Assembly (NCBI GenBank): GCA_946965045.2
Contig: OX337228.1
Span: forward strand, 6,572,001-6,636,000
Reading direction: 5' to 3'
Length of the DNA: 64,000 nucleotides
Source of the DNA: Epithemia pelagica
Taxonomy: Eukaryota > Protista > Bacillariophyta
Shown here in pieces: positions 3,188 through 35,410 of this stretch. The position numbers were made by a program, and so were the translations under genes. Under the pieces are notes generated by a model. It searched no databases and was not told the origin of the DNA. It worked only from the letters and a program-made list of their open reading frames with translations. The first letter of the stretch is position 1. Every line of letters starts with the position of its first letter.

Positions 3188-3646
3188 TTGAAAGTGTTTG
3201 GGTACGATACGACAGGTAACCTACCTACCTAATGAGAGTAGAGAGGTTTGTTGCTCTTTTCTTGTGCTCCGGAGAAAAGATAGACAAAGTAGTAGAGGTA
3301 GCAGAGAGTAGAGATTCCGGAGGGATGCCGATGACGACTGACGACACACCGGAGCGCGATATCATCCGAGCAAGCCGGTGCACTGACGTCGATCCAGAAT
3401 TTGGCGAAAGTGCGACTGCAATGACGGAAGATATTGTTGTTGTTGAAACTTTGTGGCCTCCTTTTGTGTACCTCTGTTTGTTGCGATCCTCATTGCGTTC
3501 CACTGTGTGCGCATTGCTGCCATCCTTGCCATTTGATCGTTTCTTGTGTGCGAATAGAGGAGAACCAACGAAGGAGAGAAACAAAGAGAAGAGACAGTAT
3601 GGCACACCAACAGTTGGCTGTGGGAGGAGGCCTTGAGAAAATAATC

Positions 3647-5251: not shown

Positions 5252-5719
5252 ATATCGTAGGAGGCAGGACCGACAAGGATGCACCATCACACACCAAGAA
5301 AAAAGAAGAAGAAGATGATGATGAAAATGATTTGGAATTCGACGAATCGCCGTGTTTCATCTCGAGTACCGAGAGCAGACCAACTGTGGGATGACTACCA
5401 ACGCAGTCTGTGGAACGTGAGAGGAACCACAGTCGAGGGAAAACAGGGGCTTCTATACCAACAACAACAAACAACACAAAAAAGGCTATATTATTGTTAA
5501 AAATAAGAGTTTGCGTGTCACTGTCTCTGGGGAACTCTCTTGGGAATTGTTCTAGCTAGCTCTAGAGTACCTAGATGCCCATCCTGTTGGGTTCCATCCA
5601 AAGTGTCAATCTAGTGCACCCGATATAGATCCCATGGTCGTCTTGGAATCGAGGGAGGTTTGGGGGTCGGCCATGGAACACACCACACACACGATAGAAC
5701 GATTGCGGCTGGTCCGTGT

Positions 5720-7758
5720 TTAGACACGACCACGTCCCAAGACAAAGGGAACCGAAAAGTCAATCAAATTCAGGTTGGGATCCAGGGATCGTCCCAACCC
5801 TTCCAACACCAATGTACTAATAACAATGCTGGCCATGGCCGGATCAATTTCAACCCCATGGATTCGGCAAAGGTCCAGGACATTCCCCAGCAGCTGACCA
5901 ATCCGTACGGCTCCCAAACTCAGTCCCTGTTTTCGATTGTCGTGAAATTCCGAGACAATTTGTTGAATGCCGCGCGCAAAGGCCTCGGTTCCTCCCGGAA
6001 CGTGACTGCACCGTTCATACCGGGCCCGTTCGACCATGAGACGACCCGCTTCGTAGCCCTGATTGAGAATTACGGCACGAAACAAATCACGCAAGTTTCG
6101 TTGATCGTCGGGATTGAGGGAACTGGCAATTCCGGCATCCAAAAATACAATTTTGCGCCGAACCGAAGAACCCATCTCCTCCTCCTTGTTGTCGTCGCCG
6201 TCATTCTTGTGGATGTTGTGGTGTGGTTTCTTCCATGGCATTGGTTTCCCACTCAAGGCCAACGTCCAAAACCGTTCCAACCAGGAGGCCTGTGGAACTT
6301 GCTGGGTTACAATCAAGCAATTGCCTGGATGTAGATCCCCGTGACAAAAATTGTCCAGAAAGACCATTTTCAAAAAGGCCCGAAGCAAGACACTTCCGAG
6401 TTCTTTCCGGACCTCAAGTCCTTCGACGGATTCGTCCTTGAGGAGATCCGAGATTGGTTTGGCATCCTCAATCAGCTCTTCGATCAGTACCGTCCGACTG
6501 ATCCAACCCTCAATGGGACGAGGGAAGAGTACCATGGAATTTCGTTCCTCCCGTGGACTGCGATAAAAGTTTTTTCGAAACTCGTTCAGGTTTGCGGCTT
6601 CTTCGTTCAAGTCCACTTGCCGGTACAACACATTGCCAAAGTTGGATGCCGCTCGAGGCAGATTGGCCATGCGAATAAGTTCAAATGGCAACGAGTGCAA
6701 GAGTTTGGCGATGGTATTCATGAGCCACATATCTCGTTCCACCAACCAATCCATTCGCGGGTGCAAGACCTGGCGAACAAAGAAATCCACGAAACAAAAG
6801 TGAGACATATGTGTTTGTCGATGGAACAGTGAAGCGACACGGACAGTTCCGGCACACACACCTTGACAGCCACCCACAAATCTTTGCCTTGGTTCCCATC
6901 CTCTGGAGTAGTTTGGTGGAGTTTGGCCCGATATACCTGGGCTGCCGAACCACACCCAATGACATTGTGGATTTCCAGACCTTTCTCCCGATAGTTGGCA
7001 AACGCTTTGGTCAATTCCGTGTGAGTGTGCTTCCACGAGTGCGGTGTGCCATGGTCGTGGAGATGCGACAGTCGATCGCAGACGTGTGGGGGCACCATAT
7101 CGCGACGAGTCGCGATCCATTGACAAAGCTTGACAAAGCAGGGACCCAACGCCTGCATCGAAGCTGTAAAGTACCACCACGCAAAGTCTGATACATAGTT
7201 TCGTTGGTAGAGGACACCGGTGTATTGTTGTGCCACAATCGAGGCAGGTGTAAGGGCAATCATGGGAGACAGTCGAAGGATGATTTCGCCACCTCGGATC
7301 GTCAATGCAATGATATCCCAGCATTCACGAAGCAGCCAGAGGCTAAAATTGTAGAGTTTTCGCAAAAAGCTTTCAGAACGCGGCCGAGGACTCATTGCCA
7401 CAATGTATGTCACTTCAGGGGTGCTTTCTTGGTCCTGGGATTGCCTGCCGAGGAAATTCAGCCACAGGCTTGAGTCGGCGTATCGCCAACTCCATTCCAA
7501 AGGGAATCCGAGAGCAAATCCCGATAGATTTCTTGATAGAGCCTGGGAAAATATAGATCTTCCTCGGCAATTCCACCTGTCGATCAACAGGCGTGGCTTA
7601 CAGAGCGACGCTCTGTTTCGAGTGCTGATATCGATCCAACCATGCCGGTTGACCCAATGGGGCAGACGATGACGTGTTCCTTGGAATGAGGAAAGTGATG
7701 CCGAAGAATATCGTCTGACGCTCCTCGACAAGCCACGACCATCCCTGGATCGCATCAT
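5720..7758 (-). CDS. ABC1/ADCK (UbiB-family) atypical kinase; 2 exons, intron 6770-6861
   Basis: FVKLCQW (KxGQ-like), IGCGSAAQVYRA, spliced VAVK|VLHP, HGDLHPGN, FLDAG; GT-AG phase-0 intron joins the two ORFs in frame. Confidence 0.92.
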
Positions 7759-8097
7759 AATGAACGTGTTTCGGACTGTAGGCAGGCCGTAGGGGATTCA
7801 AGGAATAGCTTTGTCGTTGCAATACAGGCCAATGGGGCATTTCGCACAGAAATCCCATGGACATGTTGGTGTGGAGGCAGACGTGCGCTTTCCAACCTAC
7901 ACTCCATCCGGCACTCCAGACGTAAACTCTACCGTCGTACTGTAGAGTAGGAACTCCCTCCAACATTCCTTGTAACACTCCATCTAAGATGCCGGCACAA
8001 CATACGCCAAGCAAAAAAAAGTTTCTGTCCATTGCAAAAGAACCGATACACGTATTGGTCTCCACACTCAAACTTGTAGCACTTGAACAGTTACACA

Positions 8098-10335
<2,238 letters not shown>

Positions 10336-10800: not shown

Positions 10801-11587
10801 GTATGCATTTATCGACGATTGCCAGAAGATGCTGGTTTTCTAGAGCAGCACAAACCCGCTCCTTGTCGGCCAGTTGTTTGTTGATAGCCTTTTCACTCGC
10901 ATGCGTCCCAGGTTCAATACGAACAGTGGTCTTGAATCTGGGCAACGATCGATCGAGTTTTACTTTGAGACACAAACCAATCTGAGTCGCCATCGAACAA
11001 TGAGGAATTGTGGGAGTGAATCGAACATCAACCGTGCTGAATGGTCCATTCGGTCGATCGACCACAGTGACCTGCTCCGGACTGACGACACCAAGTTGTT
11101 CCAAAGTCAACGGATGCTCCGGATCTTGGATGTTGCGAATTATATCAAAAATCTCATCGGCGTCAATCGAATCACGTTGGTCCGACGTCATCCCCTCTTC
11201 TTTTTCTTCTTCATTGTGCAGAAATCTGGCGGGTAAGGTTTCTGGGAGCAGGCATGGAACGCAATTTTGTTGCTTTGAAATAGCAAGCTTTTCTGTATCA
11301 TCAACAGGATAGCTAAGTCCGAGATTTCGAAGAAGGGAAACTCCTTCGCCTTTTGATAGACACGAGGCATCGATTAGCGCGTTGAGAATGGCCATATCTT
11401 CGGCAGTTTGTGGGGGCTGCGGACGACAATTCAAACTATCGAATTCATCCAATGGTGAGGTATTCTTGTCGTTTAGATTGGCACTGATTGCTGCCAATTC
11501 GGGCCACTCCAGCGCATTCCTCTTCTGGTGAGGTGCATTCGATACATCATGAACCACAGGGTTGGCATTCAATGTTGGTGGATCCAT
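10772..11587 (-). CDS. CIAO2B: MIP18 family / CIA2B (FAM96B) cytosolic Fe-S assembly component
   Basis: NANPVV N-terminus; [55 protein letters not shown]. Confidence 0.93.
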
Positions 11588-12119
11588 GCTTTTTGAGCAC
11601 CTGATGACTGATGATTTATTGAAGTTGTGTCGTTCTTATTAGACTTGATGATGGTAACCTCTTAGGGTTAGGGTCATCGTCTGATCATCATCCGGCTAGA
11701 GGTGCGTCGACCTTGACGAGAATATGGGAGACGACGAGACAATGACGAGTTCTTTACCGAAGGTACCAGCACCCAGCACTGCTACCTATTAGGGTATCCT
11801 CTAACGGGGAAGAACGGGGAAGGACGGGTCCAATTTCTTTCAGATCCTGATAACTTCCAACCATCCACGTTCTCGCTCTAGGGGGACACCACATTATATT
11901 TCTATTTGGCGTAGGAGTACGACACGCCAACCATAGCTAAGGGTACCTGATTCTCCTACCAGGAGTATCGATTAACAGCTATAGTTTTATCGTTCTCCAA
12001 GTATACGTTTCCTTTATGCATGGTCCTTGAAAGCGAATATGCAGACAATGAAAGTACGCCTTTTCGAAGGTCGGGCAGACTGCGCAGTAGCAGACGCTAC
12101 CTGATGAAAATAAAGGGCC

Positions 12120-13432
12120 TCAAAGCGTCATCGTTGGATCATAGTGTGGGGCATGAGGAGCGTACTGGTACATTTGCTGTCTTGCACCAGGATGTCGTTG
12201 ATGATGTTGGCTGTAGTCGTAGTGACCATAAGGATTCTGGGCGTAGATATGTGGTGCATAATACTGATGATGTGCTCGAGGGTCGTGCCCTGGATGCTGT
12301 AAATGCATGCCAGGATGGTGACCCAGCTCTCCGTGAGTGGGATAAGGATAATGATGGTCCATATTGTGTGCCATTTTCATTTCATCGTCTTCCTCTTCTT
12401 CTTCACCGTCCTTTAGGGTGGCAACACCGTTGTGTTTGTCCGCCTCTCGTTCATAGTATTGCTTTTCCTCAGAACTGAGAGATTTCCAGGCATTGCCCAC
12501 TAGTCTAGCAACCGAGCCCCGTTCAGAGGGAACACCCGTTTCGGTTGCTTTCAACCGAAGAACATGGGCCGAAAAGAACATGTTGTATCCTGTCTTGTTG
12601 CGCTTTCTGTTTGAGTTCTTGTCGGGAGGCTGGTATTCAGCCATCTCTTGTTGATAGCGCTTTCGGTCAGCCTTTGCCCTGGTAATTGAAAGCCGATTTA
12701 GACAACAGTGGCGGCACAAACTATAATGAATCACATACATGGACAACAAAGGACTTACCGCTCCTCATACTGTGCTTTGACTTCAGGTGGAAGTTCTTTC
12801 CATTCATTTCCTGTCTTAGCTACAAGATTTGAAGGAGGAACTCGCTTAAGTTCTGCTCCAGCATCTTCACTCTTCAAAGCTTTTTCGTTTTCTTTCGCAA
12901 GTTGCTGGAATCGTTCTTTAATAAACAGATTGTAGGCGGAAAGCGCTCGTGTAGGAGCCCCATCTTCTTTACGTTTTCGTTTGTAGGTCTGTTTTCGCTT
13001 TTGCACGAAAGACTTTAGTTTTGTGATTTCTCCCGTTATTCTCTGAATCACCGCATCCTTGCGGGCGACAACGGCTGTCAGGGCCTTCTCCAATTCTGTA
13101 GTGGGCTTTACCGTTGCAACGATTTCGTCCTGCCTCCGAGTCTCTTCGTCTTGTATTTCTTCTATCAAGTCTAATCGGTCAAACATCCTACCCGGACTTG
13201 AAGGTTTGTCCTCCTCCTCTTTGTCATCAACGTCGATTTCTTTTTCTTCGACGCCAATCTCTTTGTCATCTACACCAATCTCTCTGTCATCAACATCAAT
13301 CTCGTTTTCTTCGACGTCAATTTCGAGAGGTTTTGAGTTTTGATTTTCGATGTTCTCTTTCTCTTTCATGACATCGTCAGTTTCAATCGCAGGAGAAGGT
13401 GGACCAACTTCGTTTTCATCTATATCCGACAT
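12120..13432 (-). CDS. Two-HMG-box protein; intron 12679-12758
   Basis: APTRALSAYNLF...WKELPPEVKAQYEER|AKADRKRY, second box KTGYNMFF...WKSLSSEEKQYYE; GT-AG intron joins the frames. Confidence 0.9.
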
Positions 13433-15961: not shown

Positions 15962-17356
15962 CTACCCGCTCGCGTTGAAAAAGGTTTCCGCATCGCACAA
16001 GGTGAACTCCTTCTCGGAGACGGCCGGAATGCCTTTCATCTTGAGTTTCTGATTGAACCGATGCCAATCACTCTTGAAATGTGCTCGGTATTCGGCCGTA
16101 CTATAGAAAGTACCTCCACACGTATTGCAACTCTTGACATCCCCACTACTGCCCACGCCCACCGCTTCCGAAGATGCGGTCGACGTTCCAGGTACAACCG
16201 GACGCGAAGCTTGTTGTTCGTGTCTTGTTGGCACCGTCTGTTCAGCCCTCTCTGTTTGTTGTTGTTGCATTCGCTCTTGCTCTGCTTCCTGTTCTCTTCG
16301 TTTTTCCTTTTTGCTTTTCTTTCGATGTTTCTTTTGTTCTTTTCGGGACAAGGGGAGAGCGTACAAGTCTTTGTCGTCGTCATGACCATCATGATCATCA
16401 TCATGTGCGTCATCTCCCCCAGTGCCAGTAGGTTCACGAATGGTTTGGAGGCGTTCTACCAAGTCATCGACATCTGAATCATGATCCTCAGGGTCTGCCG
16501 ACCCTCTCTCCATCGTATTGTTGTTGTTGTCGTCGTTTGCGTCGAGCGAGAGCGGTTGTTGCTGTCGGCCTGCAATTTCCAGTTGCTCCTCCAAGTCCAT
16601 GTCTCCCTGTTTGGATATGACGACTTGCTCCAAAATCTCCAAGATACCGTCGACCTGAGACATGGTTTCACTTAAATGTCTATACAGCGAGGGATCGACT
16701 TGTACCACCAGTACATTCATGGTCTCTTTGGATTCTCGTCGAATCAATTTGTGAGCATGGGCCTGAAGGGCCAAGTCGACCACGTGTTCTTGATCGGGAG
16801 GATATTGCAATTGCATTTCCATTTTGGCCCGTTCAATCGCAATGACAGTTTTCAAAAACTTGACCGCATCGAGACATTGTTTCTTGATGGATTTGTTGGG
16901 ATGTGCGGTATAACACTTGGCCAGAGCGTGTCGTATTTGCGACGGCGTAAAGGGACGGTCCGATCCATCGGCGCGGACGCAATTGGCGGCCACCCACGTG
17001 GCAATTTGCGACAGAGTATCCTTGATGGATTGGGCACGTTCAAGATCCGACACTTGCAAATTGGATTGTTGCTTGTCACTTTGCTCCAGAATGATCTTGG
17101 CAATCTCCTCTTGATCGCGTGTGCCAAAGGCCTTTTCCAAGTCGGCCGCCTTGGCAAACTGTCCCTTGGACACATTGGTGAATATGCGATCCGTTTGAAG
17201 AACCTCCGACATGTCCTTTTCCAATCCAGCGCGATAGTCCATCACTTTATTGCGGTAACAGGCAATCTCGAATCGCTTCCCACCCTTGTTGCACCGAACG
17301 ACGGCCACGTTGGTCAACTTGACTTGATTGATGGGTTGGTTAATTTGCCTCGACAT
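15962..17356 (-). CDS. SBDS: Ribosome maturation protein SBDS/Sdo1 with C-terminal C2H2 zinc finger
   Basis: NQVKLTNVAVVR, KRFEIACYRNKV, IFTNVSKG; CNTC...HFKSDWHRFN finger. Confidence 0.95.
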   Translation of the reverse strand: MSRQINQPINQVKLTNVAVVRCNKGGKRFEIACYRNKVMDYRAGLEKDMSEVLQTDRIFTNVSKGQFAKAADLEKAFGTRDQEEIAKIILEQSDKQQSNLQVSDLERAQSIKDTLSQIATWVAANCVRADGSDRPFTPSQIRHALAKCYTAHPNKSIKKQCLDAVKFLKTVIAIERAKMEMQLQYPPDQEHVVDLALQAHAHKLIRRESKETMNVLVVQVDPSLYRHLSETMSQVDGILEILEQVVISKQGDMDLEEQLEIAGRQQQPLSLDANDDNNNNTMERGSADPEDHDSDVDDLVERLQTIREPTGTGGDDAHDDDHDGHDDDKDLYALPLSRKEQKKHRKKSKKEKRREQEAEQERMQQQQTERAEQTVPTRHEQQASRPVVPGTSTASSEAVGVGSSGDVKSCNTCGGTFYSTAEYRAHFKSDWHRFNQKLKMKGIPAVSEKEFTLCDAETFFNASG

Positions 17357-19850: not shown

Positions 19851-20009
19851 GACGCACGCAAATAGGTATTCAACCGCTCATGTCGGTTTAAATTATGGAC
19901 AAGTGAAACAAAATAGAAGAATGAGGATTATTTTACTCTAGAAAGCCTGTTAGGCGATGCTTGGGATTCCCCGCTTCTCCTAGCAAAATTTGACGGCCTT
20001 CCAAAAGTG

Positions 20010-20092
20010 TCTCGCGAACCGGAATCGAACCGGTGACCGATGGATTTATGTGCAACTACAGTCCACCGCTCTACCAACTGAGCTATCACGAG
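20010..20092 (-). tRNA. tRNA-Tyr(GUA) with a 10-nt intron
   Basis: Acceptor stem CTCGTGA/TCGCGAG plus discriminator A; D-arm GCTCAGTTGGTAGAGC; anticodon stem GTGGA/TCCAT around CT-GTA-G; intron TTGCACATAA after position 37; T-loop GGTTCGATTCC. Confidence 0.96.
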
Positions 20093-23005: not shown

Positions 23006-24484
23006 ATGGCTGACTACCCACCACCGGCCGATAAAATCAAAGACGATACCAATGATACCAAGGATGCCGGCGATTCCGATTCCGTCGACCTTCATGATAT
23101 TACAGACGTGACCTTGGGTCCGGATGGCGGCGGTGCCCACACCATGGTTGCCACCAAAAGCGCCAGCGAGGTTTCGGCCCGCCAACGACGCACCAAGAAA
23201 CTCTTGATCTACGCTGCCATTGCGACAGTAGTGTTGTGCATTATCATTGGTATTGCAGTGGGAGTTTCGGGAGGTGGTGGCAGCAGCAGTGGATCGACGG
23301 TGGGTGTGACACTTCCTAAACCCCAAGTCGAAGAGTCCACACTGGAGCGAAACCGAAAGACCTTGACGCAGATCCTCATCCCGAGATACACGGCTCGTGG
23401 TATGGATATGGCCCCCGTCAGCGAGCCCGACACTTTCCAAAACCGTGCCCTGGATTATGTGGCCGGTTCCGAACTCTTTGAAGAGCTTACTGCCGACCAA
23501 AACGTGGAACGGTACGCCGCCGTCGTCTTTTACTTGTCCACATTTCGACAGCCCCATCTTTTGAACCAGAACTTGCAACCCTGGCAGCGCAATCGAAACT
23601 GGTTGGCCAATACCGAAATCTGTCTGTGGGAAGGTATCGAATGTAACGCAAATGAATCCGTGGTCGGTATTGTTCTCCCAGAAAACAGAATGTCTGGAAC
23701 TTTGCCGTTCGAGTTGTCTCTTTTGGACAACCTGTCCAAGCTTGATCTGACTTCCAACTTGATTTATATGGACGAGAACAACCATGGATTATGGAGCATG
23801 CTTCCTGGCCTGCGACAACTTCTCATGGATGACAACTTTGTGATCAGCGAAACCGGAATCCCTGAGGAGTTTGCGGATTTGTCCAGTATTGAGAAAATAT
23901 CGCTCTCTTTCAACTTGCTCCAAGGTTCCTTCAACGAAGGTGTGTTTGGATCTATGGAATCTCTGATGCATTTCGAAGCGGAATCCAACTACATCTCGGG
24001 TAGTCTTCCCGATGACATGCTCAAGCTTCCTCGATTGACCTACATTTACATGCGCCGCAACTCCCTCGAGCTCACCCTGGCCGACATTCTCGTACCAGGC
24101 AACTTGCCGTCTCTCTTTGCCCTGTGGCTCGATGGAAATTCCATTACGGGCAACATTCCCGCTTCGATTGGTGGATTCACCTCTCTGGCATCTCTCAGTA
24201 TTACCGGCACTCAGTTGGCTGGTCCCATTCCTCCCGAAATGGCACAGTTGACCGACTTGCAACGTTTGTGGTTGTACGAAAACCAACTGACGGGCGAGAT
24301 TCCAGTCAATGTGGCCAACGCATGGAGCAACATTGAAGTCCTTGAAGTGTACGGCAATGATCTGGTGGGTACCATGCCGCCTTCCATTTGTGCGGCCGTG
24401 GCCGCGTCCGACTACGAGTTGGCCATTTTGTCGGCCGACTGTGGCGAAATCGACTGCCAGGATTGCTGCACGGAATGTTACTAA
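23006..24484 (+). CDS. Single-pass membrane leucine-rich-repeat protein
   Basis: TM helix LLIYAAIATVVLCIIIGIAVGV; WLANTEICLWEGIEC cap; plant-type LRRs (LxxLxLxxNxLxGxIP); C-terminal Cys cap. Confidence 0.9.
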   Translation: MADYPPPADKIKDDTNDTKDAGDSDSVDLHDITDVTLGPDGGGAHTMVATKSASEVSARQRRTKKLLIYAAIATVVLCIIIGIAVGVSGGGGSSSGSTVGVTLPKPQVEESTLERNRKTLTQILIPRYTARGMDMAPVSEPDTFQNRALDYVAGSELFEELTADQNVERYAAVVFYLSTFRQPHLLNQNLQPWQRNRNWLANTEICLWEGIECNANESVVGIVLPENRMSGTLPFELSLLDNLSKLDLTSNLIYMDENNHGLWSMLPGLRQLLMDDNFVISETGIPEEFADLSSIEKISLSFNLLQGSFNEGVFGSMESLMHFEAESNYISGSLPDDMLKLPRLTYIYMRRNSLELTLADILVPGNLPSLFALWLDGNSITGNIPASIGGFTSLASLSITGTQLAGPIPPEMAQLTDLQRLWLYENQLTGEIPVNVANAWSNIEVLEVYGNDLVGTMPPSICAAVAASDYELAILSADCGEIDCQDCCTECY

Positions 24485-24720: not shown

Positions 24721-24852
24721 GAGTCGGGGGGGCAACCCTAAACCCTCTATAGATCATGGTGAGACAGACAGACTCTTCCAGCGCGAGTTGGGGGGCAACC
24801 CTATAGAAACCCTAACTATATAGATCATGGTTCGACAGACAGACTCTTCCAG
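24721..24852. repeat. Two imperfect ~65-bp tandem units containing telobox-like AACCCT(A)
   Basis: GAGT.GGGGGGCAACCCTA...TATAGATCATGGT..GACAGACAGACTCTTCCAG starts at 24721 and 24785. Confidence 0.9.
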
Positions 24853-25297
24853 TCCTTGTTTTGTTGCGCACTCATCCGATTGAACATATTATTCGTACCC
24901 AGGATAAGAATTTTAGTAATTTTATCCTCATTTGAGTCGCACAAAACCTCTTTTTTATCCTGAGATTGCTTATCTCGTGACCAATAACGGAGATTATCCG
25001 CTGGATAAAATGCCTTATTTGTAGTGGGATAAGGCCTGTCCGTCATCAATTCCTCGTACTTCTATCTAGTAACCGGCATGCGCGAACACAACGCCCGTCT
25101 AACCCGACATCCTCCCAGCATTGCCAACCCAAAGACACCGACAATGCTCTTTCGTAGTAACCGTCCAATGACCAATTATCCCAAATGCCGAATAACCATC
25201 TCGCCGTCATCAACGTAATTACGATATCTAAAGACTAGTAATGCCTATTCAAAAAATTTGTTTGTTTGTTTCGTTGCGCTTTCTTCCACCTTCCACC

Positions 25298-28200
25298 ATG
25301 CCCCGATCTTCCCGAGCATCGTCGTCGTCGAATCGTTCCTGTTCGTCTCGTCGTCGTACCAGCACGAATGCCCCACGCAACGAAGTGAACGAAGAAGATG
25401 ATGCAAGAGAAGTTGTTCGTGTCGGACGCCGTGTCCAATTCCCTGTCATGACAGTACTTCCTCCGAGTACACCTCCAACAAACACAGCAACAGCAAATAC
25501 TCCTACAAACAATTCTCCTACGACAACATTGTCTCCTAACGATGACAATGATGATGAATCTACCATGGATAATCATTCCACTAGTCCTGCCCACAATCAA
25601 CAGGCTTCCCCATCCCCCCGTCGTACTCGCGCACCGCAATCGTTACTGGCCGCAGCACGTGGACAAACCTCTATAACCAACCCGACACTCCCTACTCCAC
25701 GAATGACAATTGGCGAAATGCGGGCCATCACCCACCAAATTATGGATACCCTTATGCGCAAGAACACCCGCGATGCCTATAAGTACCGGATTTTAGAGTT
25801 TCGCGGTTTCTGTGCCACAATATACAATTTCCAACCCGAGTGTACACGTTACACTGTCACGGGTGATAAGCTTTACCAATTTCTCTTCTACCAGGTTTTC
25901 CGGGACCAGAAAACCAACAATAAGAAACCTGGTGTATTTAATGTGAGTGACTACGACAGACTGGAGCAAAAATATGTCGCACTCCTTGCTGATAACCAGG
26001 GAACTATCATTGGCAACGAACGTGCTATTTTGGACCAAATGGAACCAGACAATCCGCTCGGTTTTTCCTCCATTTCAACGTACAGAGCTGCTGTACGAAA
26101 GTTATATGACTACCAAGCGGAAGAAGGAAACGGTAGCAATTCTCTTAATTGGGATACCCAAATATGTACCCAAGGCGTTAAGACCTTGTTAAAGATTGTA
26201 GAGGTAAGTACAAAAACTACTGCACGGAACATAAATCTGGACATATGTAATTATCTCACACTTTCTTTCCTTCACAGGGTCGCTCAGCCCGTGTTGCCAA
26301 ACGGAACTACCAGGAGAAAGTAAAGGAATGCTCCCCATTTGAGCACACTGAATTAGTTGGCAAGATTGAAGAATCTTTTTGGCTCACTGGCTGCAGCAAA
26401 ACAGATATTCGCACAACGTTTACGTCACTCAGAAACCGGTTCTCATTTCTTATGAACTATGCTTCTATTCTCAGAAGCGAAAGCCTTCACCTGGCTGAGC
26501 TTTCTGACCTCCGCGTATTCCCCATTAAGTGCAGACAAGACCACGACTCGATGGACATTGTTCTTATGCAGTTTTTCACGGGCAAAACCGTAAAATCCAA
26601 TTCGCCATCGCAATTTGCCCGCGCAACCAGACACCGCGATGTTTTGTCATGTCCGTTGGGCGCTTTAGCGATCTACCTGGTATACCGATTCTCCACCAAC
26701 GTTGAGTTCACCCCAGACTTCCGTTTTCCCGATCTTCGCATTAACTCGGAATGGTTTGACACAAAGATTTTGGTCGAGTTGGGTTCAGACCCCAACCGTC
26801 AAATGGACCAGCAATCTTTCCGTCGTGAACTTTCGAAGGTCTTTAAGAAACTCGGTATAGTATCTGACCATGTTACTCACTGGTGTCGCCACACGGCGCC
26901 TACTCACTGCGAGTTCAAGGAGTTGTCACCTGACTTCGTCAAACAACTCGGTAAGTCTGATTGTTGTTTCATTGTTTCTATGGACATGCATCTCACCATT
27001 CTGTTTTTCTTTCAACAGGCAACTGGGAACGCGACACCCAGGAATCGCGTTACAGTGCCAAAGTTCCCATTTCAGTGATTCGCTGTATGGGAGGCTTTGA
27101 AGTCTCCGAAGGCTATTGGTTGCCCCGCGGTAATGTCAAAGTCCCATCTGAGTTGGAGCAACTTGTCTGGCCATGGATCGAAGGTGCGGAACTCTACGTC
27201 GCTGGGTACGATGACGAAGAGGACGAAGCGGGCATGTCAATGGAGCATCCCACTGCCATGGAATTCCTCCGTTTGCTAAAGTTTTTGCGACGCATATTTA
27301 TTCAGGACATGGCGGCGATGTTATGCATCTTAGACACACCCACAGCGGATGCCCGAGCGTCACAACGACTTTCTCACGACCTGTTCAAGCGTTTTCCTCT
27401 TTTTTCCTCTCCTCTTTTCACGGATTATACAGCCAAAATGAAGGAACAGCTACAATTGGCAAACAGAGTTGACAAGGATCCCAACACTCGTCGAATCGAC
27501 CAATGTTTGCCCGGTATTAACAAACGATTTGACATTTTGGGCAACAGCATGGCGAGGATCGAACGGTCAATGGAGGATGTCCATACACGTATGGAAGACG
27601 ACATGTTTACAACCGCGGACAACTTCCACCAATTGGAAATCCGCATCAACCACGAGGCGAAAAAGCGGCAAATCGCATTCACAGACGCCCTCGGATCTTT
27701 TTTTCACCGAGGAATTTCAGAACGCACAATGGATTTGCAGACATACGCAACAAACCTGGCGCAGTCGCCACACAACAACAATGGTCTCTCGCCCAATGGG
27801 ATTTCGCCAAGTCCCAACAACGAAATCCCTGTGGCCCCTGACATGGGAACGACCGACACTCAAACCCTCCCCCTGGATATCCTCACTGCAGAAGTACCAT
27901 CTCCACACAACGGTAATGAGGCGACAATGCAACAACAGCCTCTACCTGACAATACGGCACCTACGAGGAATAACGAGCCAGACGACGCTACGGACGAGCT
28001 TACGAGGGTGTCTAACAAAGTGATGTCTTTCCGTTTTATTGGTAACAACAGCAGTCTGTGTTTGGCGGAAATCTACCAGGAGTTTTTTGGACTTGGTGAG
28101 TTCCAAGGGATTCCTGTTGATGGTGGCTTCTTCGCTCTGGAACAACAATACAAGACGAAATGGCGGTCTGGGTATTCTCCATCTGAAAAAAATTTTTTCT

Positions 28201-28400
28201 CCCGTGCACAAGCTTTGGTGAAAGGTGTTGCAGCGAAAGTACAAGTCAACGACGGTGTCTGGAACAGTGTTGTGGAGGAACAATGTCAATTATGGGACCA
28301 ATACGTGAAACAAAAGGGTGTATCGGGAGCCTTGCGTTATTTACAGAGTACCGGGGAAATTCGCACAAAGGGCAAACGCAAACGGGATATAGTTAACTAA
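25298..28400 (+). CDS. Crypton-type tyrosine recombinase (NDC10-II/YR domain plus C-terminal GCR1_C), ~986 aa; introns 26204-26277 and 26951-27018
   Basis: Two GT-AG introns join three ORFs in frame. Catalytic-type residues: ILRSES (R), GKT (K), HWCRH (HxxR), QLG|NW..QESRYS (W, Y). GCR1_C-like EIYQEFFG...ALEQQYKTKWR...EKNFFSR. Confidence 0.88.
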
Positions 28401-28516
28401 TGGTTGGTGCCTTCTTGATTGAAGGCGGGTGGTGGTGGGACAATCATGAACTATATCTAAAGTATTAACCCAATAGTCTCGAATCTGCCAAATACTATAT
28501 TTCTTTCTATAGTTAA

Positions 28517-29098
28517 TTATTCACTAATAACAGACTGTGCCAATGAATCACTTTCAAGATTGACAAGGCGCTCCTCCATATGGCCTATTCGTACACTCAA
28601 TCCGTCCATCTGTTTTACAATTGTTTCCAACATTGCCTCTACGCGTCTGTTTGAGTCATGCTCCTGTCCATAGATCTGGGGTGTATCAATTTCTCCCGAC
28701 CCAATGACATCTGGCTGAACGTCCACTGTCATGCCTTTTCTTGTATTCCTTCGACTGGTCTTGGTCTTCTCATCCACCAAATTTTCTGACTGCTTTTTCT
28801 GATAAATAAGAAACTCGTTTGAGAAAATAATGTAATGAGGGTTTTTTTCAATAATAGCCATTGCACCTTCAGCATTATGCGGTACTCGCAAGTTCTGAGG
28901 GGCATAAGCCACTTTCTGACCGTCAGCAAACTGTACGGTAACGCGCCCTTTCTTCTTATAGGGATCGGGTAACCTTGTAACCCAACCACAATGATCCTTC
29001 CGTTGCGACCATTGAGATCGGACAGCGACCACATCCCCTAACTTCCAGCGGCAGATCCTAGGAGAATCGACAAAGCTCCGAGGAGACTCGTCATCCAT
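28517..29098 (-). CDS. Element cargo: SH3/KOW/Tudor-like beta-barrel protein with C-terminal coiled coil
   Basis: ATG 29098 (MDDESP); WKLGDVVAV...GWVTRL...RVTVQFADGQKVAYAPQNL pattern; heptads MLETIVKQMDGLSVRIGHMEERLVNLE. Confidence 0.6.
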   Translation of the reverse strand: MDDESPRSFVDSPRICRWKLGDVVAVRSQWSQRKDHCGWVTRLPDPYKKKGRVTVQFADGQKVAYAPQNLRVPHNAEGAMAIIEKNPHYIIFSNEFLIYQKKQSENLVDEKTKTSRRNTRKGMTVDVQPDVIGSGEIDTPQIYGQEHDSNRRVEAMLETIVKQMDGLSVRIGHMEERLVNLESDSLAQSVISE

Positions 29099-29292
29099 TG
29101 TCTCAGAGAACTCTAGGTTTTGATAAATATTGGTTGCACGAGTCAAACGGACTGGAAATGGTATGGATCCATCCAATGCAATCCAATGAACTGAGAAGTT
29201 TCCTGTCGACTCCACTCGCAAACATTGGAGACTTGACGACCGCACGATTTGACAACAAACAACAATCAAACAACTTTGGCCATAAACCAAGG

Positions 29293-30324
29293 ATGGATCC
29301 TAAGAAAAAGGTCAAGGACGAACCAACAAATTCGTCTCCTAACAACAATCAGGTCATCTACATACTTGATTCTTCGTCGGAAAGTTCCACTCCTATGAGC
29401 GAAGGAAAGCAACAACCAAAAACCGATCCCGACGAAAAAGTCGAGGATAAAATCATGGGTCCTACGGCTGGAAAAGGCAAGGAGAAAAACAATCCTGATG
29501 GAAAAGAGGAGAGTGACAAAAAAGGCGAGGAGATCGAGAATGAGAAGAGCAACAAAATTTTGGGAAAGCGCAAAAAAGCTCCACCCTCTGCCAATACGAC
29601 TGAGGGAGTCAACAACATCGTCGGTCCTGTTCCTGTTTCTACTCCATCCCAATCGATTCCCAACTCAACCGCGCTTGGTAGTACTCTTTTCCCAACACAA
29701 ATGACTACCAACATGACCACTCCTCTTTCCATGTCGGGGGCCAATCTCAACCCGGTCTGTCCCCTTACAACGCACAACCTTCCTATAAACCTTCCTGTTC
29801 TTCAACAGAGTGGCAATCTCGGGCCTGGAAAATATAAACGATTCTTCACTTTCCACGGATTCAACCGTATTCCTCGGACTAACACCGAAGCGAAAGACTT
29901 CATATCGTGCTTTCTCCGGTATTTGGATTCGGAGGGAGACATCTTGTCCTTTCACTCCCGGTCGCTAATGGATCATGAAGACACTAAAACTTACCGCAGT
30001 GGTATCCCAAATGGTATGCGCTTGGTCCGCCTGGACGTATACCATCACCGTCATCCCGATTTCATCCATGAGCGGAAATTGTTTCCATGCCAAGTTGTAC
30101 AGACGTTTCTGTTGTATGCTGCTGGTATTCCTGTACTCCGTATCACCATGTCAGAGCCTAAAATTCATATCATGGAATCGGCGACTGTTTCTGGTTACAT
30201 TCATTTCGGTACTCGTCATATCGAATCTCCTGATGAACCGAACCAGGCAGTCGTACCGTGTAAGATTGCTGTCAGTCCCGTTGGTGATTCTGGCACCGTG
30301 ACTACCTTTTACCCCCATCCGTAG
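29293..30324 (+). CDS. Element cargo: unknown protein, disordered N-terminus plus novel C-terminal domain (paralogue of 30563-31267)
   Basis: ATG 29293 (MDPKKK); long intact ORF; motifs KRFFTFHG, IPNG..LDVY, LLYAAGIPVLRI. Confidence 0.75.
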   Translation: MDPKKKVKDEPTNSSPNNNQVIYILDSSSESSTPMSEGKQQPKTDPDEKVEDKIMGPTAGKGKEKNNPDGKEESDKKGEEIENEKSNKILGKRKKAPPSANTTEGVNNIVGPVPVSTPSQSIPNSTALGSTLFPTQMTTNMTTPLSMSGANLNPVCPLTTHNLPINLPVLQQSGNLGPGKYKRFFTFHGFNRIPRTNTEAKDFISCFLRYLDSEGDILSFHSRSLMDHEDTKTYRSGIPNGMRLVRLDVYHHRHPDFIHERKLFPCQVVQTFLLYAAGIPVLRITMSEPKIHIMESATVSGYIHFGTRHIESPDEPNQAVVPCKIAVSPVGDSGTVTTFYPHP

Positions 30325-30562
30325 GTAGAGTAAAGAGAATAACTATGTAATAAATTATGAGAGTACCAATAACAGAGTACCAATAGCACTATTTAACAAC
30401 AGTATAGACAAATTTGTTTCCCGATTTTGTCATTTAACTGCACATTTATGTGGCAAAATTTTGGGTGAATACAAAGGACTGAAATTTCTATTCTTGTAGT
30501 AGATTCCTTATTCCCAATTCGCAAAAAAGACGTAACATCTTATAGTCATAAAAACATCCATT

Positions 30563-31267
30563 ATGGATGTTAATAGGGGAGTATGGCCGTACTTAGAGGG
30601 TCGGCATTACAACGTTGAACCTTTCGCCACTGATAACCAGTATGCATGGAACGACAGGATTAAACAGTTTTTCACTTTCCATGGAGATGACGTGAACCAA
30701 CCAACCAAAATACAACGCATTGTACAAGAGGTTTTAAATATTATGGGAGAAGATGCAACACCTAGAGGGTTCTCTCTTGAAGAAGGTACAAGCAATACAT
30801 ATTACACCGAGTGCCGTTTCCATCGATTTATTCCCGACGGCGCACATATCAAATCTATGGACTTATATCGTATGGATAACAAGAACGGGAACAACCACAG
30901 GATCACATACCAGGTTACGTCATCGCGAATTCTCTACCTAAGTGGAAATCCTGTTATGCGAATTAAATCAACTCTACCGGAACTGTATGTTTTTAACCAA
31001 GACTGGCTACTTCTTGAAATACAAAGGTCCGAGAATACTGAGTCGGTACAATCAAAGACTGGTATTTGTATATCTAACCACATGTTGGATTCGATCCCAG
31101 ATCAAGACCCCAACACAATTCATCCGAGAGACTTTTACCTGGTTGTTCCGTTAGGCAATTGGACTTCGCGTCTGCAGGGAACAGTGGAACGAGACGAATT
31201 TAACCAAATTAAGAGGGGAGAATCGCCCAATAACCGTAATGTTCGAAGGCGTACATCTAGGTACTAA
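30563..31267 (+). CDS. Element cargo: unknown protein, paralogue of 29293-30324
   Basis: Motifs KQFFTFHG, IPDG..MDLY, ILYLSGNPVMRI, colinear with the upstream ORF. Confidence 0.75.
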   Translation: MDVNRGVWPYLEGRHYNVEPFATDNQYAWNDRIKQFFTFHGDDVNQPTKIQRIVQEVLNIMGEDATPRGFSLEEGTSNTYYTECRFHRFIPDGAHIKSMDLYRMDNKNGNNHRITYQVTSSRILYLSGNPVMRIKSTLPELYVFNQDWLLLEIQRSENTESVQSKTGICISNHMLDSIPDQDPNTIHPRDFYLVVPLGNWTSRLQGTVERDEFNQIKRGESPNNRNVRRRTSRY

Positions 31268-31310
31268 AACACTTATAGTTTAAACGATTGGACTCAATGA
31301 TTTACGTAAT

Positions 31311-31784
31311 TTAGGGATTTTTACTGTCGAAAAAATCTTTGATATTTTTCTGCTTGTATTTCGTCTCCTCCGTCTTCTTATCAAACGGACGGAACACACG
31401 ACGATAAGATCCGTAATGCAAAATGGCATCTTCATTGTCAAACAAGGTGATGGCAGTCACTTTGTCATTCGGGTGGCCATGATCAACATCCTCCGGCTTG
31501 ATCACTTCATCCTTGGAGACAGGGGACGGTTGGTCCTTGAGGAAGGACGAAATGTCTTCATGTTCCTCGGTTAGGAAATCCTCGTAATCCGTTCCTTCCT
31601 CCTCTCTTTCAACTTCGTCCAGGTAGCCGCGGTTTTCCTTGGCTTCCCATTCATCAATTTTTTTCTGTAGGGACTTGGGGATGACCTTGTTGTAGTCTTC
31701 CTCCTCCTTGTCGTAGGAGGAATCCATGGACATCTCCAAGATTCGATCAAACGTAGTAGTAGACTTGTCGTCCTGAGAAACCAT
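31311..31784 (-). CDS. Element cargo: acidic 157-aa protein with C-terminal PIP box
   Basis: ATG 31784 (MVSQDD); very D/E-rich; ends KQKNIKDFFDSKNP (QxxIxxFF). Confidence 0.7.
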   Translation of the reverse strand: MVSQDDKSTTTFDRILEMSMDSSYDKEEEDYNKVIPKSLQKKIDEWEAKENRGYLDEVEREEEGTDYEDFLTEEHEDISSFLKDQPSPVSKDEVIKPEDVDHGHPNDKVTAITLFDNEDAILHYGSYRRVFRPFDKKTEETKYKQKNIKDFFDSKNP

Positions 31785-32082
31785 GGTGAATATTGTTACC
31801 GTATTTCGTGTGGATGCAATAAATTTGTAGTGTGTACCAAGTGAACGCGTGCCTAGACCTACAGAGAGCAAAGTCAACTTCTTAAACCAGCGCGTATAAA
31901 TATCTATAATACGAAAACTCAGTGTTCGTACCATCAGGTGCAAGTAAGACATGAACATATAGGAAGAAAACAACTGAAAATAACGGTTCGAGAGGCAAGC
32001 CAGTCAATAAGTTTGGGCGCCATCGTGGGTGAGATTTCAACAACACACGATACTCGAAACAAACAAACAAACGAGGTATACG

Positions 32083-32466
32083 ATGGCGACAAACGACGCG
32101 TTATGGTGTGGACAATGTCGAAGTCACAGTTGTATGGAATGCGACAGAATATTTCTACAGGCCATGCGTAGTCAAGTTGAATACTGTATGTCGGGGAAGG
32201 ACAATAAGGTGATGAAGAGGAGGAAAGAAGGAAAGGAACAAAAAGTAAAGCTACAAGCAGTCCAAGCAAGAAACGCAACTGAAGCATATTTGTCAACGAC
32301 GAAAAGGAAACTACTATTCCAGAGTTGCATTCATTCTACTTCTACTACAAAGAAAATGAAAAAAGGAAAGATTGTGTCAGAGAGGCAGCAATCAACGAGA
32401 ACGATACAACACGATGGTGATTTGTCCAAAAAGATTGTGCAGGAGAACAAAGAGGATAGAGAATAG
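32083..32466 (+). CDS. Element cargo: basic 127-aa protein with N-terminal CxxC-x4-CxxC motif
   Basis: ATG 32083; WCGQCRSHSCMEC; K/R-rich remainder. Confidence 0.55.
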   Translation: MATNDALWCGQCRSHSCMECDRIFLQAMRSQVEYCMSGKDNKVMKRRKEGKEQKVKLQAVQARNATEAYLSTTKRKLLFQSCIHSTSTTKKMKKGKIVSERQQSTRTIQHDGDLSKKIVQENKEDRE

Positions 32467-32870
32467 CCGCTTAAGAAACCAACACTGTGGTGTAGAAATC
32501 ACATTACTGTCACGCTATTGTATTGTAGGAATCTTCGACCTTAGGCATTTTGTACCATCAGACATCAGACAGTCATCAACGTCAACGATAGAGTGTGGCT
32601 CAATTAGTAGGTTGGTGGTAAGTATTTAGGGAAAATTTAATGGGCGTATGGCAATGTATCCTACTGGGTAGTTGGTATGACATGCGCGGAATTCAAATGA
32701 AAAGACGTTAAAACTGGCCTTACTCGGTAAGTTTGCGCCGATCTGGACTTACTGGACTGGGATAAAACGGCGCGTATCCTACGTGATTGACTACGGGGTG
32801 GAGTCCCTTATCCCAGGATACATAATTGTCCTGAGATCAATAACGTTCTATTATTGAGAACAACTCGACC

Positions 32871-35410
32871 ATGGACTTCTCTTCGGTTCCTCGAGCGTTG
32901 GAGAGTTTGAATCGTCGCAATCCTCCATTGGATGACCAAGTATTGAAAGTGGCGGAATCACTGCTCCATTCTCCAAACAATGATGATGATTCCACCACAC
33001 AATCATCCTTTTGCAATCACTTGTCGGTTCTGTTGGAGGCAGGTTCACAACCAGTGGCAGCCGAGGGCCAAAGTCGTCCTCCTCGTCGCTGGGAATCTTT
33101 GGCCGTGGGTTTATACGTGGCAACCGAGGTGTTGAGTCAGCAGATTTCCAAACTGGAACAAAGGTCCATCACGTCGAACGAAAACAATACTGTCGCAGTG
33201 ACTGTGGGTGGTGAAGGAGTGTACATGGATGGACCTCGAGTTCCCTCCATTCAGACGACCACAACATCGAATGGTTCCGAAACTCCAAAGGCAGCTTCAG
33301 GTGTTGTGGCTGGGAAATGGACAAGTCCTGATCTGGAAGACGATGAGATTCTTTCCTTGTGCAAGATGTTGCACCCGGTAGCACTGGACCATTTGGAGGA
33401 TTCGGAACCACGCGTCCGAGCACTGGTGGCCAAGGCGGCCGGTGTGTACTGTAAGGCAACCGTGTTGTTGCAGCAGGGAGAGTCGTTGCGCATCGACATT
33501 CACTCGCGCGTCGTGTCCTCCATTCAACAGCATCTCGCTCAGGGACGAAAAACGGCCGAAGAAGCCGGAAGCAACTTTAGCAAATCCAGTACGGGCGCCT
33601 TGGATGATACGACAGGATGGCGAGCTCTCGAAACCAATTGGCAATGCTTGGCGGCCCTCATTAGTGCCATGGGACCCCTGTATTTGGATGATTTTGGAGC
33701 CTTTTCCGACCAACTCTTGCAAGATTGTCAACACTCGTGCGTGGTTCATGTCAATCGACATGTACGCGCCGCGGGTATGGCAGTTTTGGAACAGTGCGTG
33801 GCGGCCGCTGTCCGGTCACCAGTTCATTCCGCCTCCCTCCTGGCGGATACTCAATCTTCTTTTTCGAAAACCATGGTGGTGGTCCTTCGGGATGGTCTTG
33901 CGGTACGTTTCTGTTTAAGTGTCGTTGGGGCGTTGTTTCCTCTCGCTTTTGTATCCCTCACAGCCCATTTGTCGAATCGTTTCCTTGCTGTTTTTGCTTT
34001 GTCCGTGTGCGACAGGACAATTGGTCCCAAGTACGCATGGCCGCATCTGTTCTCTGTCGAGCCTACCTGGTGGCTCTCAAGAATTGCCAGGTCGATTTCA
34101 CCAAAGTCTTTCCCTCTCTGTTGCCCCGCATGTGTTTGAATCGGTTTTATTTGGCCCAAGGAGTCAAGTTGTACAGTCACGAAACCTGGCGTATGGTCAT
34201 GGAGACTTCGGGCATTGGGTATGTGGTGCAATATTTACCGGCCGTGTGTCGGTACTATGTCAAAATGTGCGATGCCGACAATCACGTGGTCCGCGAAGCG
34301 GCCTGTCAAGCCATTGCCGAACTTGCCGTGCGGTTGGGAGAAGACGACACGTACCACAGCAAGTTGCAACCTCATGTCGACCTCTTGCTCCATGCACTCC
34401 TCATGTGCTTTCACGATGAATCCTGGCCGGTTCGAGATGAAGCCTGTTTGGCCTGTGGCATTTTGTGTCGGTCCTATCCCGACGAGTGTCGTCCACAACT
34501 CAACACCTTGTGGCAACGATGGTCGGAACAATTGACGGATCAGATTTGGTCGGTGCGGGAAGATGCTGCGGTGGCCCTGGGCGATGCACTAGAGGCCTAT
34601 GGAACCGAGTTTTACCAAAAGATCCAGGCCCTGCTGAGCGAGTTGTTGCCCTCGGCCAAAAACCAACCCGCCATGACCATGGCCGAGTACAAGGCACGCC
34701 AAAATGATGCGGCAGCCCATACGAATTCCCAATTGTATAGTTGCGGAAGTCTGGCTCCCAAACTGAACAAACGCAAAGAAGGGGCGGGACGGATCGGCTG
34801 TAGCTCGTGCGCGGTGGATCGGGAAAAACAACCCTGGGAAGCTACCGACGGCTCAATCTACATGATTCGGGAGTTGGTCACGCGTTGTTGCAATGCCCCA
34901 GAGAATGATGACGGAGGCAGCAACAACGTGGTGGTACTGAGCGATGCGGAAATCAAGGCATGGCTCGAGCAACTCGCCGATGTCTGTCGTGTCCGACACT
35001 TTCCACAGGCCGATGATTTGCGCGCCACATTGTGGAGGCAACTACCTGCCATGGCCCAAGCGCTGGGGAAACAACGGTTTAAGCGAAACGGATACTTGGA
35101 AATCTTTGTGGATATGCTTTTTTCCAGCATGGATTCCAAAAGTGGTGCCTCACAACTCTGTCAACATGCGGCGGGTCAATGTGCCGAAGAACTCTCCGAG
35201 CTGATGGGCGTGGCCATTTTTCGAGGGCGTTTGGAAGATGACTATCAACGAGAAATATTTGATCGCGTCATGCGAGAACGGCGGGCCATGTCCAAAGGAC
35301 CGGCCAGTATCATGGACGGTGGAGCCGCCTTTTCTCCCTTTGGTCCTCCCGGACTCTTGAGTGGAGTTGGGAACGGTGAGTCCGCGGCAGTCTTTCCCGG
35401 CCGAGTCTAA
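32871..35410 (+). CDS. ARM/HEAT-repeat protein; intron 33903-34015
   Basis: HEAT-like EPRVRALVAK, NRHVRAAG, GLA|DNWSQVRMAA, NHVVREAAC, SWPVRDEAC, IWSVREDAA; splice in frame. Confidence 0.85.

Follow-up and report, generated by a model that had tools for sequence, protein, structure and literature searches.

A probable CryptonF-type transposon family with conserved accessory genes beside its tyrosine recombinase

Positions 24887 to 32855 of the DNA analyzed here (the window, a stretch of 64 kb from contig ctg1309l of ENA assembly ERZ21939226) very probably hold an intact, and probably autonomous, member of a multicopy family of CryptonF-type tyrosine-recombinase transposons. Few eukaryotic transposons are as poorly understood as Cryptons, whose activity was observed directly for the first time in 2023 and which are usually described as a recombinase gene and little else. 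The element departs from the usual CryptonF architecture in its length of ~8 kb, in four or five extra conserved genes and in a 7-bp core with flanking motif arrays. The whole unit of 7.6 to 8 kb, accessory open reading frames (ORFs) included, has moved recently in this genome, as copies of one subfamily (B) show. It inserts precisely at (T/C)ATTATT, and this heptamer then stands on both sides of the element and in one copy at the empty site. A preliminary description of the window had proposed a Crypton-type element of ~7.9 kb that combines a tyrosine recombinase (YR) with five ORFs as its own module, a proposal supported by linked copies and by empty sites. Multigene Cryptons of this kind were not reported in the papers that we searched, all from the open literature, and the family is known so far from this genome alone. 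The element and its ends are as follows.

24887 to 32855, plus strand: whole element of 7,969 bp, with the terminal repeat counted on both sides; homology with copies L001 and L003 begins at 24887, homology with L003 stops at the TATTATT of 32849 to 32855, and the flanks are unrelated.
24887 to 24893, plus strand: left terminal direct repeat TATTATT, the presumed crossover core; eight left ends start with (T/C)ATTATT-CGTACC(C)AGGATAA, and empty sites keep one copy.
24887 to 25040, plus strand: left terminal region with six GGATAA/TTATCC motifs, better conserved than coding DNA.
32665 to 32855, plus strand: right terminal region, with TTATCC-CA-GGATA at 32808 to 32820, then ...ATCAATAACGTTC-TATTATT.
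32849 to 32855, plus strand: right terminal direct repeat TATTATT, from comparison with other copies.

The family has at least nine copies in the assembly, and each of the nine studied lies on its own contig. Subfamily A consists of the window copy, L001, and L003, subfamily B of L004, L005, L006, L007, and L008, and L009 is basal. The alignment of eight left ends and six right ends gave the conserved termini (T/C)ATTATT-CGTACCCAGGATAA ... GATAAC-nnnn-(T/C)ATTATT, and similarity ends immediately outside them. The window copy, L003, L004, L005, and L007 carry (T/C)ATTATT at both ends. The terminal regions are more conserved than the genes: window positions 24887 to 25034 are 89% identical to L003 and 84% to L001, while the coding DNA is ~71% identical, and positions 32673 to 32820 are 80% identical to L003. 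The left end packs six GGATAA/TTATCC motifs into 154 bp, against 0.44 per kb across the window; none of the 6,307 other intervals of 154 bp reaches six, and the positions of the motifs at this end are conserved between copies. The motif CCCAGGATA occurs twice in the 64 kb, at 24898 and 32812, both times on the plus strand. It does mark the ends at 24898 and 32820 that had been proposed for the element, but the true ends lie 11 bp and 35 bp further out, at 24887 and 32855. The element has no long terminal repeats or long inverted repeats (the longest inverted repeat has 27 nt with 74% complementarity) and no Rfam family, and the window holds no second copy of it.

Recent mobility was revealed by two pairs of subfamily B copies. 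L005 and L007 are 98.6% identical across 7.54 kb, and, nested insertions aside, L004 and L008 match along the entire element with 98 to 99.8% identity; in both pairs, the 2.5-kb flanks are unrelated. Empty sites, which the preliminary description had proposed to look for, were sought by cluster look-ups of the flanking host proteins and then on the contigs of partners with at least 90% identity, a route that requires an identical flanking protein. The host genes flanking L004 and L007 have such partners on other contigs, which gave two precise empty sites, L010 (for L004) and L011 (for L007). The Lipid_desat and GT4 genes, separated by 10.9 kb in L004, stand 715 bp from each other in L010; the L010 flanks match those of L004 with 96.9% and 99.9% identity, and the two alignments overlap by 10 bp. 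The empty site reads ...GATTCC-CATTATT-CGTGATTCTC... (GATTCC-CATTATT-CGTGATT), the filled left junction ...GATTCC-CATTATT-CGTACCAGGATAA... and the filled right junction ...GATAACGTTT-CATTATT-CGTGATTCTC... The empty site for the L007 insertion is ...AGAAAT-CATTATT-GGGGGTCATCTACA... There is one heptamer at the empty site and there are two at the filled site; the insertion is therefore exact. This one-to-two pattern is characteristic of recombination of an element site with a short target of the same sequence.

The insertions lie upstream of host start codons, at 124 bp (L004), 372 bp (L007), and 15 bp (window). In the window, the gene on the right is a long ORF at 32871 to 34139 that matches no family, and the element ends 15 bp upstream of its ATG; the insertion is therefore in the 5' leader or promoter of that gene. 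The left flank is the gene of an LRR protein (23006 to 24484). No tRNA adjoins the element as a possible target, the nearest one (tRNA-Tyr, 20009 to 20092) being about 4.8 kb to the left. The GC content is ~41 to 45% in the accessory region and 48 to 53% in the flanks. Directly to the left of the element, a G-rich stretch (24745 to 24852) contains a 37-nt direct repeat in two copies that are 71 bp apart and 92% identical.

The recombinase gene lies at the left end of the element, and its structure is as follows.

25298 to 28400, plus strand: tyrosine recombinase gene, 986 amino acids (aa), with exons at 25298 to 26203, 26278 to 26950, and 27019 to 28400; NDC10_II-type catalytic domain and GCR1_C-type C-terminal domain (about 27987 to 28397).
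26204 to 26277, plus strand: intron 1, 74 nt, GT..AG, from frame joining and homologue alignment.
26951 to 27018, plus strand: intron 2, 68 nt, GT..AG; the environmental relatives P0008, P0010, and P0011, called as ORFs, stop at the same position.

The ORFs at 25241 to 26323, 26452 to 27078, and 26961 to 28400 fuse to one frame when both introns are removed, from the ATG at 25298 to a single terminal stop. This splice model is supported because uninterrupted homologues align straight over both junctions, and the intact 986-aa YR with two spliceosomal introns of the preliminary description was thus confirmed. Exons 2 and 3 match Pfam NDC10_II (1e-13 and 4e-10), and the YR also gave weak matches to Phage_integrase and to a SAM-like N-terminal domain. 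All six catalytic positions are present, in columns conserved with 14 homologues: R (ILRSE), K (GKT), HxxR (HWCR), W (GNW), and Y (RYSA). The GCR1_C assignment, also part of that description, was recovered by profile-profile comparison with hhalign, in which a profile of five C termini of the family was compared with four relatives that are each above the Pfam cutoff (probability of 98.3%, E = 2.3e-14, 115 columns). A sequence and profile search of the PDB with exon 2 gave nothing useful.

A HMMER search with YR exon 2 returned 684 matches among 1.84 billion representatives, and the closest cluster led to five more loci, all in the same assembly. The exon 2 tree comprised 105 sequences, with unlabeled database sequences as the outside relatives. 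The nine copies are monophyletic in it (support of 0.989), with subfamily A resolved as (window, (L001, L003)), subfamily B as (((L004, L008), L006), (L005, L007)) and L009 in basal position. The nearest YRs outside the family are 45 to 50% identical and lie on environmental contigs of 1 to 4 kb; many of the more distant relatives are single ORFs of 800 to 950 aa on contigs of 3 to 5 kb. One distant relative on a longer contig from another sample, L012, is also a single-ORF case, with no accessory homologues within 10 kb. The exon 2 profile found no relatives among JGI metagenome contigs. We assign the family to CryptonF by the type of recombinase, the GCR1_C domain, the ends, and the mode of insertion.

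Five accessory genes follow the recombinase gene.

28517 to 29098, minus strand: c1, 193 aa, predicted small beta-barrel (weak SH3-like match) and long C-terminal helix; found only in subfamily A (window, L003).
29293 to 30324, plus strand: c2, 343 aa; the N-terminal half is charged and disordered with a conserved G-x-KRK motif, and the C-terminal half is a paralogue of c3.
30563 to 31267, plus strand: c3, 234 aa, beta-rich domain without known relative; found in subfamilies A and B and in the basal L009.
31311 to 31784, minus strand: c4, 157 aa, acidic, with N-terminal TFDRILEMSMD and C-terminal QKNIKDFF (PIP-box consensus).
32083 to 32466, plus strand: c5, 127 aa, with an invariant LWCGxC-x4/5-CxxC (four cysteines), a conserved KRKLLF, and a basic tail; found in subfamilies A and B.

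The layout described earlier, with five intronless ORFs separated by gaps of 116, 194, 43, and 298 bp, matches exactly. The duplicated domain it included was also recovered, since the C terminus of c2 and c3 share a domain by alignment and are paralogous (tblastn, E = 4e-4). The links between the YR and the accessory ORFs recur in the other copies (L003, L001, L004, L005, L007, L008, and L009). L003 is complete and has the gene order of the window, YR-c1-c2-c3-c4-c5, with amino acid identities of 59% (YR), 53% (c1), 43% (c2), 53% (c3), 36 to 43% (c4), and 38% (c5). L001 is decayed: a stop codon interrupts its exon 2, and the DNA between the end of the YR gene and the middle of c3 is deleted, but c4 and c5 are kept. 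Subfamily B holds c2, c3, and c5 at 24 to 40% identity, together with a minus-strand ORF of 167 aa that shares the N-terminal TFDKILxMSMD with c4 (hhalign, 83%). The same ORF was rejected as a c1 homologue (hhalign, 0.3%), and what it has in common with c4 is only a 23-residue N-terminal motif. In L009, an ORF with the c2/c3 domain lies directly after the YR gene (E = 3e-19). The accessory ORFs are therefore linked to the YR in all four lineages with interpretable interiors.

These ORFs are under purifying selection. For every ORF, in the comparisons of the window with L003 and of L005 with L008, pN was 0.08 to 0.41 and pS was 0.58 to 0.88; where synonymous change was unsaturated, dN/dS was 0.07 to 0.32. 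In a search of 5.8 billion protein clusters, c3 recovered itself and one other protein only, and so did c2. The profile of the c2/c3 domain found relatives on large ENA contigs only, of which four of five were verified as belonging to ERZ21939226; the proteins recovered with c2 and with c3 lie on other contigs of this assembly, and P0182 implies a tenth contig for the family. The c3 profile had no relatives among JGI metagenome contigs, and neither it nor the 20-nt end motif found anything in IMG/VR. The accessory ORFs are thus long-standing genes of the element and not captured host cargo: they are kept in subfamilies A and B and in L009, their pN is far below pS, and the searches with c2 and c3 met relatives on element copies only.

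That the five ORFs belong to no recognized family, as previously noted, was upheld by all searches. Pfam gave only subthreshold matches for the accessory ORFs of both subfamilies, PHROGs gave nothing, and PDB sequence and profile searches with the c2/c3 domain, c5, and c1 gave nothing useful. The AlphaFold model of c3, of moderate quality (pLDDT of 62.7, pTM of 0.65), had no Foldseek match in the PDB or BFVD at E ≤ 0.001, with TM-scores of about 0.2. The more specific labels given to three of the proteins draw on short motifs or weak matches. For c1, taken as a chromatin-like reader, there is an SH3-like Pfam match, but it is weak (E = 0.002) and the structural model is poor (pLDDT of 51.5), too low for a structure search. 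The PIP-box pattern is Q-x-x-[ILM]-x-x-[FY]-[FY], and the C terminus of c4, described as PCNA binding, has this motif in two copies (QKNIKDFF in the window and QTKIDSFF in L003). For c5 as a zinc protein, the motif consists of four invariant cysteines in the pattern C-x2-C-x4/5-C-x2-C.

Several copies carry further insertions or rearrangements. In L004, a piggyBac-type transposase (DDE_Tnp_1_7, 726 aa, 7331 to 9967) is nested between the left end and the YR gene; it is absent from the sister copy L008 and is a later nested insertion. Another piggyBac-type transposase (DDE_Tnp_1_7, 677 aa) is encoded at 2613 to 4646 of L001, 2.3 kb upstream of the element. In L007, the right end of the Crypton contains a nested 1.38-kb element (11305 to 12685) with terminal inverted repeats of ~30 nt (CCCTCGGTATCAGTGTCCACTGCTTAGCTG...), and its position coincides with the start of the solo right end of L005. 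The latter belongs to a tandem repeat at 382 to 20519 of L005 (ctg1340l, 189581 to 210099) whose units measure about 5.8 kb and 13.1 kb. In the first unit, the element is missing except for the final 95 bp of its right end (2833 to 2928, identical to 16001 to 16096), joined to the flank at ...GGCCGATTAG|ATTTTGGGCG. Given these 95 bp and the imprecise join, the unit was rejected as an empty site; what it shows is a solo right end or else an internal deletion, not a clean product of the recombinase. L006 (8461 to 17184) has the ends of the family and a broken YR gene, with unrelated ORFs of 189 aa (plus strand) and 464 aa (minus strand), without family match, in place of c2 to c5; its right end is truncated after TTATCCTAGGATAAC. 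This copy may be an exception to the conserved gene set. L009 (9178 to 13584) is the most divergent member, with its YR gene in pieces followed directly by one ORF of 291 aa with the c2/c3 domain on the opposite strand and then by an LTR retroelement (RVT_2, Chromo). L011 contains a block of ~6 kb (3808 to 9883) that the L007 haplotype lacks. Situated between ABC1 and the empty site, the block has four ORFs without a Pfam match (219, 625, 280, and 843 aa) and may represent a further insertion polymorphism.

Crypton integration reportedly follows a model by Goodwin, in which the short terminal direct repeats correspond to the target and one copy is found at the empty site. Recombination of this type was seen directly for CryptonF-1_cRei of Chlamydomonas, which has CACCG ends, targets CAYCG, excises cleanly, and prefers 5' untranslated regions and gene-proximal DNA (PMC9977147). 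By analogy, the YR of the present family would join the two terminal heptamers and release a circle with the junction ...GATAAC-nnnn-(T/C)ATTATT-CGTACCCAGGATAA..., which for the window copy is predicted to read ...ATCAATAACGTTC-TATTATT-CGTACCCAGGATAAG... The circle junction would then recombine with a matching heptamer elsewhere, with strand exchange over the 7-bp core. More tentatively, the GGATAA/TTATCC arrays within about 150 bp of each end may be binding sites for the GCR1_C domain of the YR or for c5, and the bound arrays might build a synaptic complex. The proteins c2, c3, c4-like, and c5 (plus c1 in subfamily A) might act as nuclear cofactors for direction, timing, or target choice, and the PIP-box-like tail of c4 might tie the process to replication. 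The empty site of the window copy is predicted to be CCGATTGAACA-TATTATT-GAGAACAACTCGACC.

Some observations count against this interpretation of the window. All the evidence comes from a single assembly. Neither an empty site for the window copy, by the route through identical flanking proteins, nor a near-identical second copy in subfamily A was found; the copies of this subfamily (window, L003, and L001) are ~71 to 73% identical in DNA, so that recent activity has been demonstrated in subfamily B alone. The direct Pfam match of the window YR to GCR1_C is below threshold (E = 0.015). The circle stage is one that we infer, no circular junction having been observed. The accessory proteins have no recognized domain or fold, and their roles are guesses from motifs of 6 to 8 residues. 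Finally, L008 has CATTATT on the left and TATTATG on the right (16925 to 16936), so that either the core tolerates a mismatch or the crossover point is not pinned down. In no other copy do the two heptamers differ at both core ends, which hints at the site of strand exchange or at mismatch tolerance. The window copy itself is fully intact.

The comparison with known systems places the family closest to CryptonF. Like CryptonF elements, it has a YR with an NDC10_II-type catalytic region and a C-terminal GCR1_C domain, encoded by a gene with introns (PMC3212892, PMC9977147). It also shares the lack of terminal inverted repeats and long terminal repeats (LTRs), the short terminal direct repeats that equal the target and stay in one copy at the empty site, the insertions near the 5' ends of genes and the low copy number. 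However, the core is 7 bp, (T/C)ATTATT, instead of 5 to 6 bp; there are six genes in 7.97 kb, whereas CryptonF elements usually have one protein gene in about 3 to 5 kb (not a defining criterion); and the extra conserved genes without known relatives and the GGATAA arrays at both ends are further differences. CryptonF hosts are fungi, oomycetes, and Chlamydomonas, and the present host is, so far as can be told, not a fungus, an oomycete, or a green alga. The host genome is eukaryotic: it has spliceosomal introns and, in the nucleus, an FtsZ-type gene (3434 to 5251 of the window, with Tubulin/FtsZ and FtsZ_C domains); the latter suggests an alga or protist with FtsZ-based organelle division. 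CryptonS elements, known from oomycetes and the diatom Phaeodactylum tricornutum, share the YR and the short terminal direct repeats, and the present host may be of a stramenopile type as well. Nevertheless, CryptonS has its own conserved C-terminal region without GCR1_C and mostly TATGG termini (PMC3212892), in contrast to the GCR1_C and TATTATT of this element. Some CryptonS members encode one extra protein, a C48 peptidase; by Pfam, the extra proteins here are not peptidases. MarCry-1_FO, a Crypton-Mariner of Fusarium, likewise carries more than a recombinase gene (PMC3212892), but it is a composite of two transposons and no second transposase is present here. The DIRS, Ngaro, and PAT elements are also distinct, since Pfam scans of all ORFs of the element found no reverse transcriptase or RNase H and it has no LTRs or split repeats. 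The suggestion that this could be an undescribed class of mobile element was overstated: recombinase, ends, and insertion mode are those of CryptonF.

The gene-rich layout also raises the question of a plasmid-like life, in which the circle of 7.6 to 8 kb persists and replicates off the chromosome, the accessory proteins serve maintenance, partition, or transmission and the chromosomal copies are the integrated state. The yeast 2-micron plasmid replicates extrachromosomally with Flp and with Rep1, Rep2, and Raf1. Plasmids of this type are likewise DNA units of ~6 to 8 kb with a tyrosine recombinase and some three small nonenzymatic proteins, and the compact array of six genes with small intergenic gaps, the PIP-box-like tail of c4, and the KRKLLF motif of c5 would fit such a life. 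So would the purifying selection on the accessory genes in four lineages, which is hard to explain if the YR alone suffices, as in the single-ORF L012, and the unexplained route by which Crypton copy number rises in Chlamydomonas (PMC9977147). However, no replication initiator, helicase, polymerase, or capsid-like protein was recognized among the element proteins, there is no structural match in the PDB or BFVD, and the end motif and c3 are absent from IMG/VR. In addition, 2-micron plasmids exist as free circles, have long inverted repeats on either side of their FRT sites, and use Flp for copy amplification, whereas the recombinase here is of a different family, the copies lack long inverted repeats, and all of those found are chromosomal, in contigs of 62 kb to 1.6 Mb, with no free circular contig seen. 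We consider such an integrating episome quite unlikely.

Starships of fungi resemble the family in having a YR at one end with other genes that move along, in site-specific insertion at a short target and in recoverable empty sites. Under a Starship-like reading, the YR would be the sole gene of the element and the five ORFs would be captured host genes. The ORFs do lie inside the mobile unit, c1 is present in subfamily A and not in B, and L006 carries different interior ORFs. But Starships measure tens to hundreds of kilobases with variable cargo derived from the host, while size and content are nearly constant here, at 7.6 to 8 kb without the nested transposons and with fixed, element-specific genes. 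The searches with c2, c3, and their shared-domain profile reached only element copies in the assembly, and c2, c3, and c5 have been kept since the deepest split of the family, where synonymous change is saturated. Moreover, the DUF3435 domain of Starship captains was not found by Pfam on any YR exon at E values up to 1. This reading is very improbable: the ORFs are conserved genes of the element, not variable captured host genes, so that the term "cargo" of the preliminary description does not fit them, and the element is neither a Starship-like cargo carrier nor a new class. It is scarcely credible, lastly, that the unit is not mobile but a domesticated, Crypton-derived gene cluster spread by segmental duplication, as might be thought from the frequent domestication of Crypton recombinases (PMC3212892) and from a window copy that is single in its subfamily and without known empty site, since at eight loci whose flanks are unrelated homology breaks off within 1 to 2 bases of the shared termini, two empty sites are precise, some copies (L001, L006) are decaying through stops and deletions, other transposons are nested in copies, and the catalytic residues are intact, unlike in domesticated forms.

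A multigene CryptonF-type family thus remains the preferred interpretation, and one unlikely extension of it bears on what the accessory genes might do. The family could be an integrating mini-episome, whose orphan proteins (the c2/c3 domain, c5, and c4) would couple the YR circle to host replication, with a replicative or heritable extrachromosomal phase. If true, eukaryotes would have a small and simple equivalent of bacterial integrative elements, intermediate between one-gene Cryptons and giant Starships.

Purifying selection on the extra genes through deep divergence, heterozygous and precisely bounded insertions, and defined ends with repeated motifs make the family a compact and tractable system in which to learn what a eukaryotic YR transposon needs beyond its recombinase, such as control of direction, choice of target, and a link to replication. 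It bears on the route by which Crypton copy number rises and on how cargo carriers such as Starships might have grown from simple Cryptons. For builders of genome integration tools, a YR with a defined 7-bp core and flanking motif arrays may be of interest as well.

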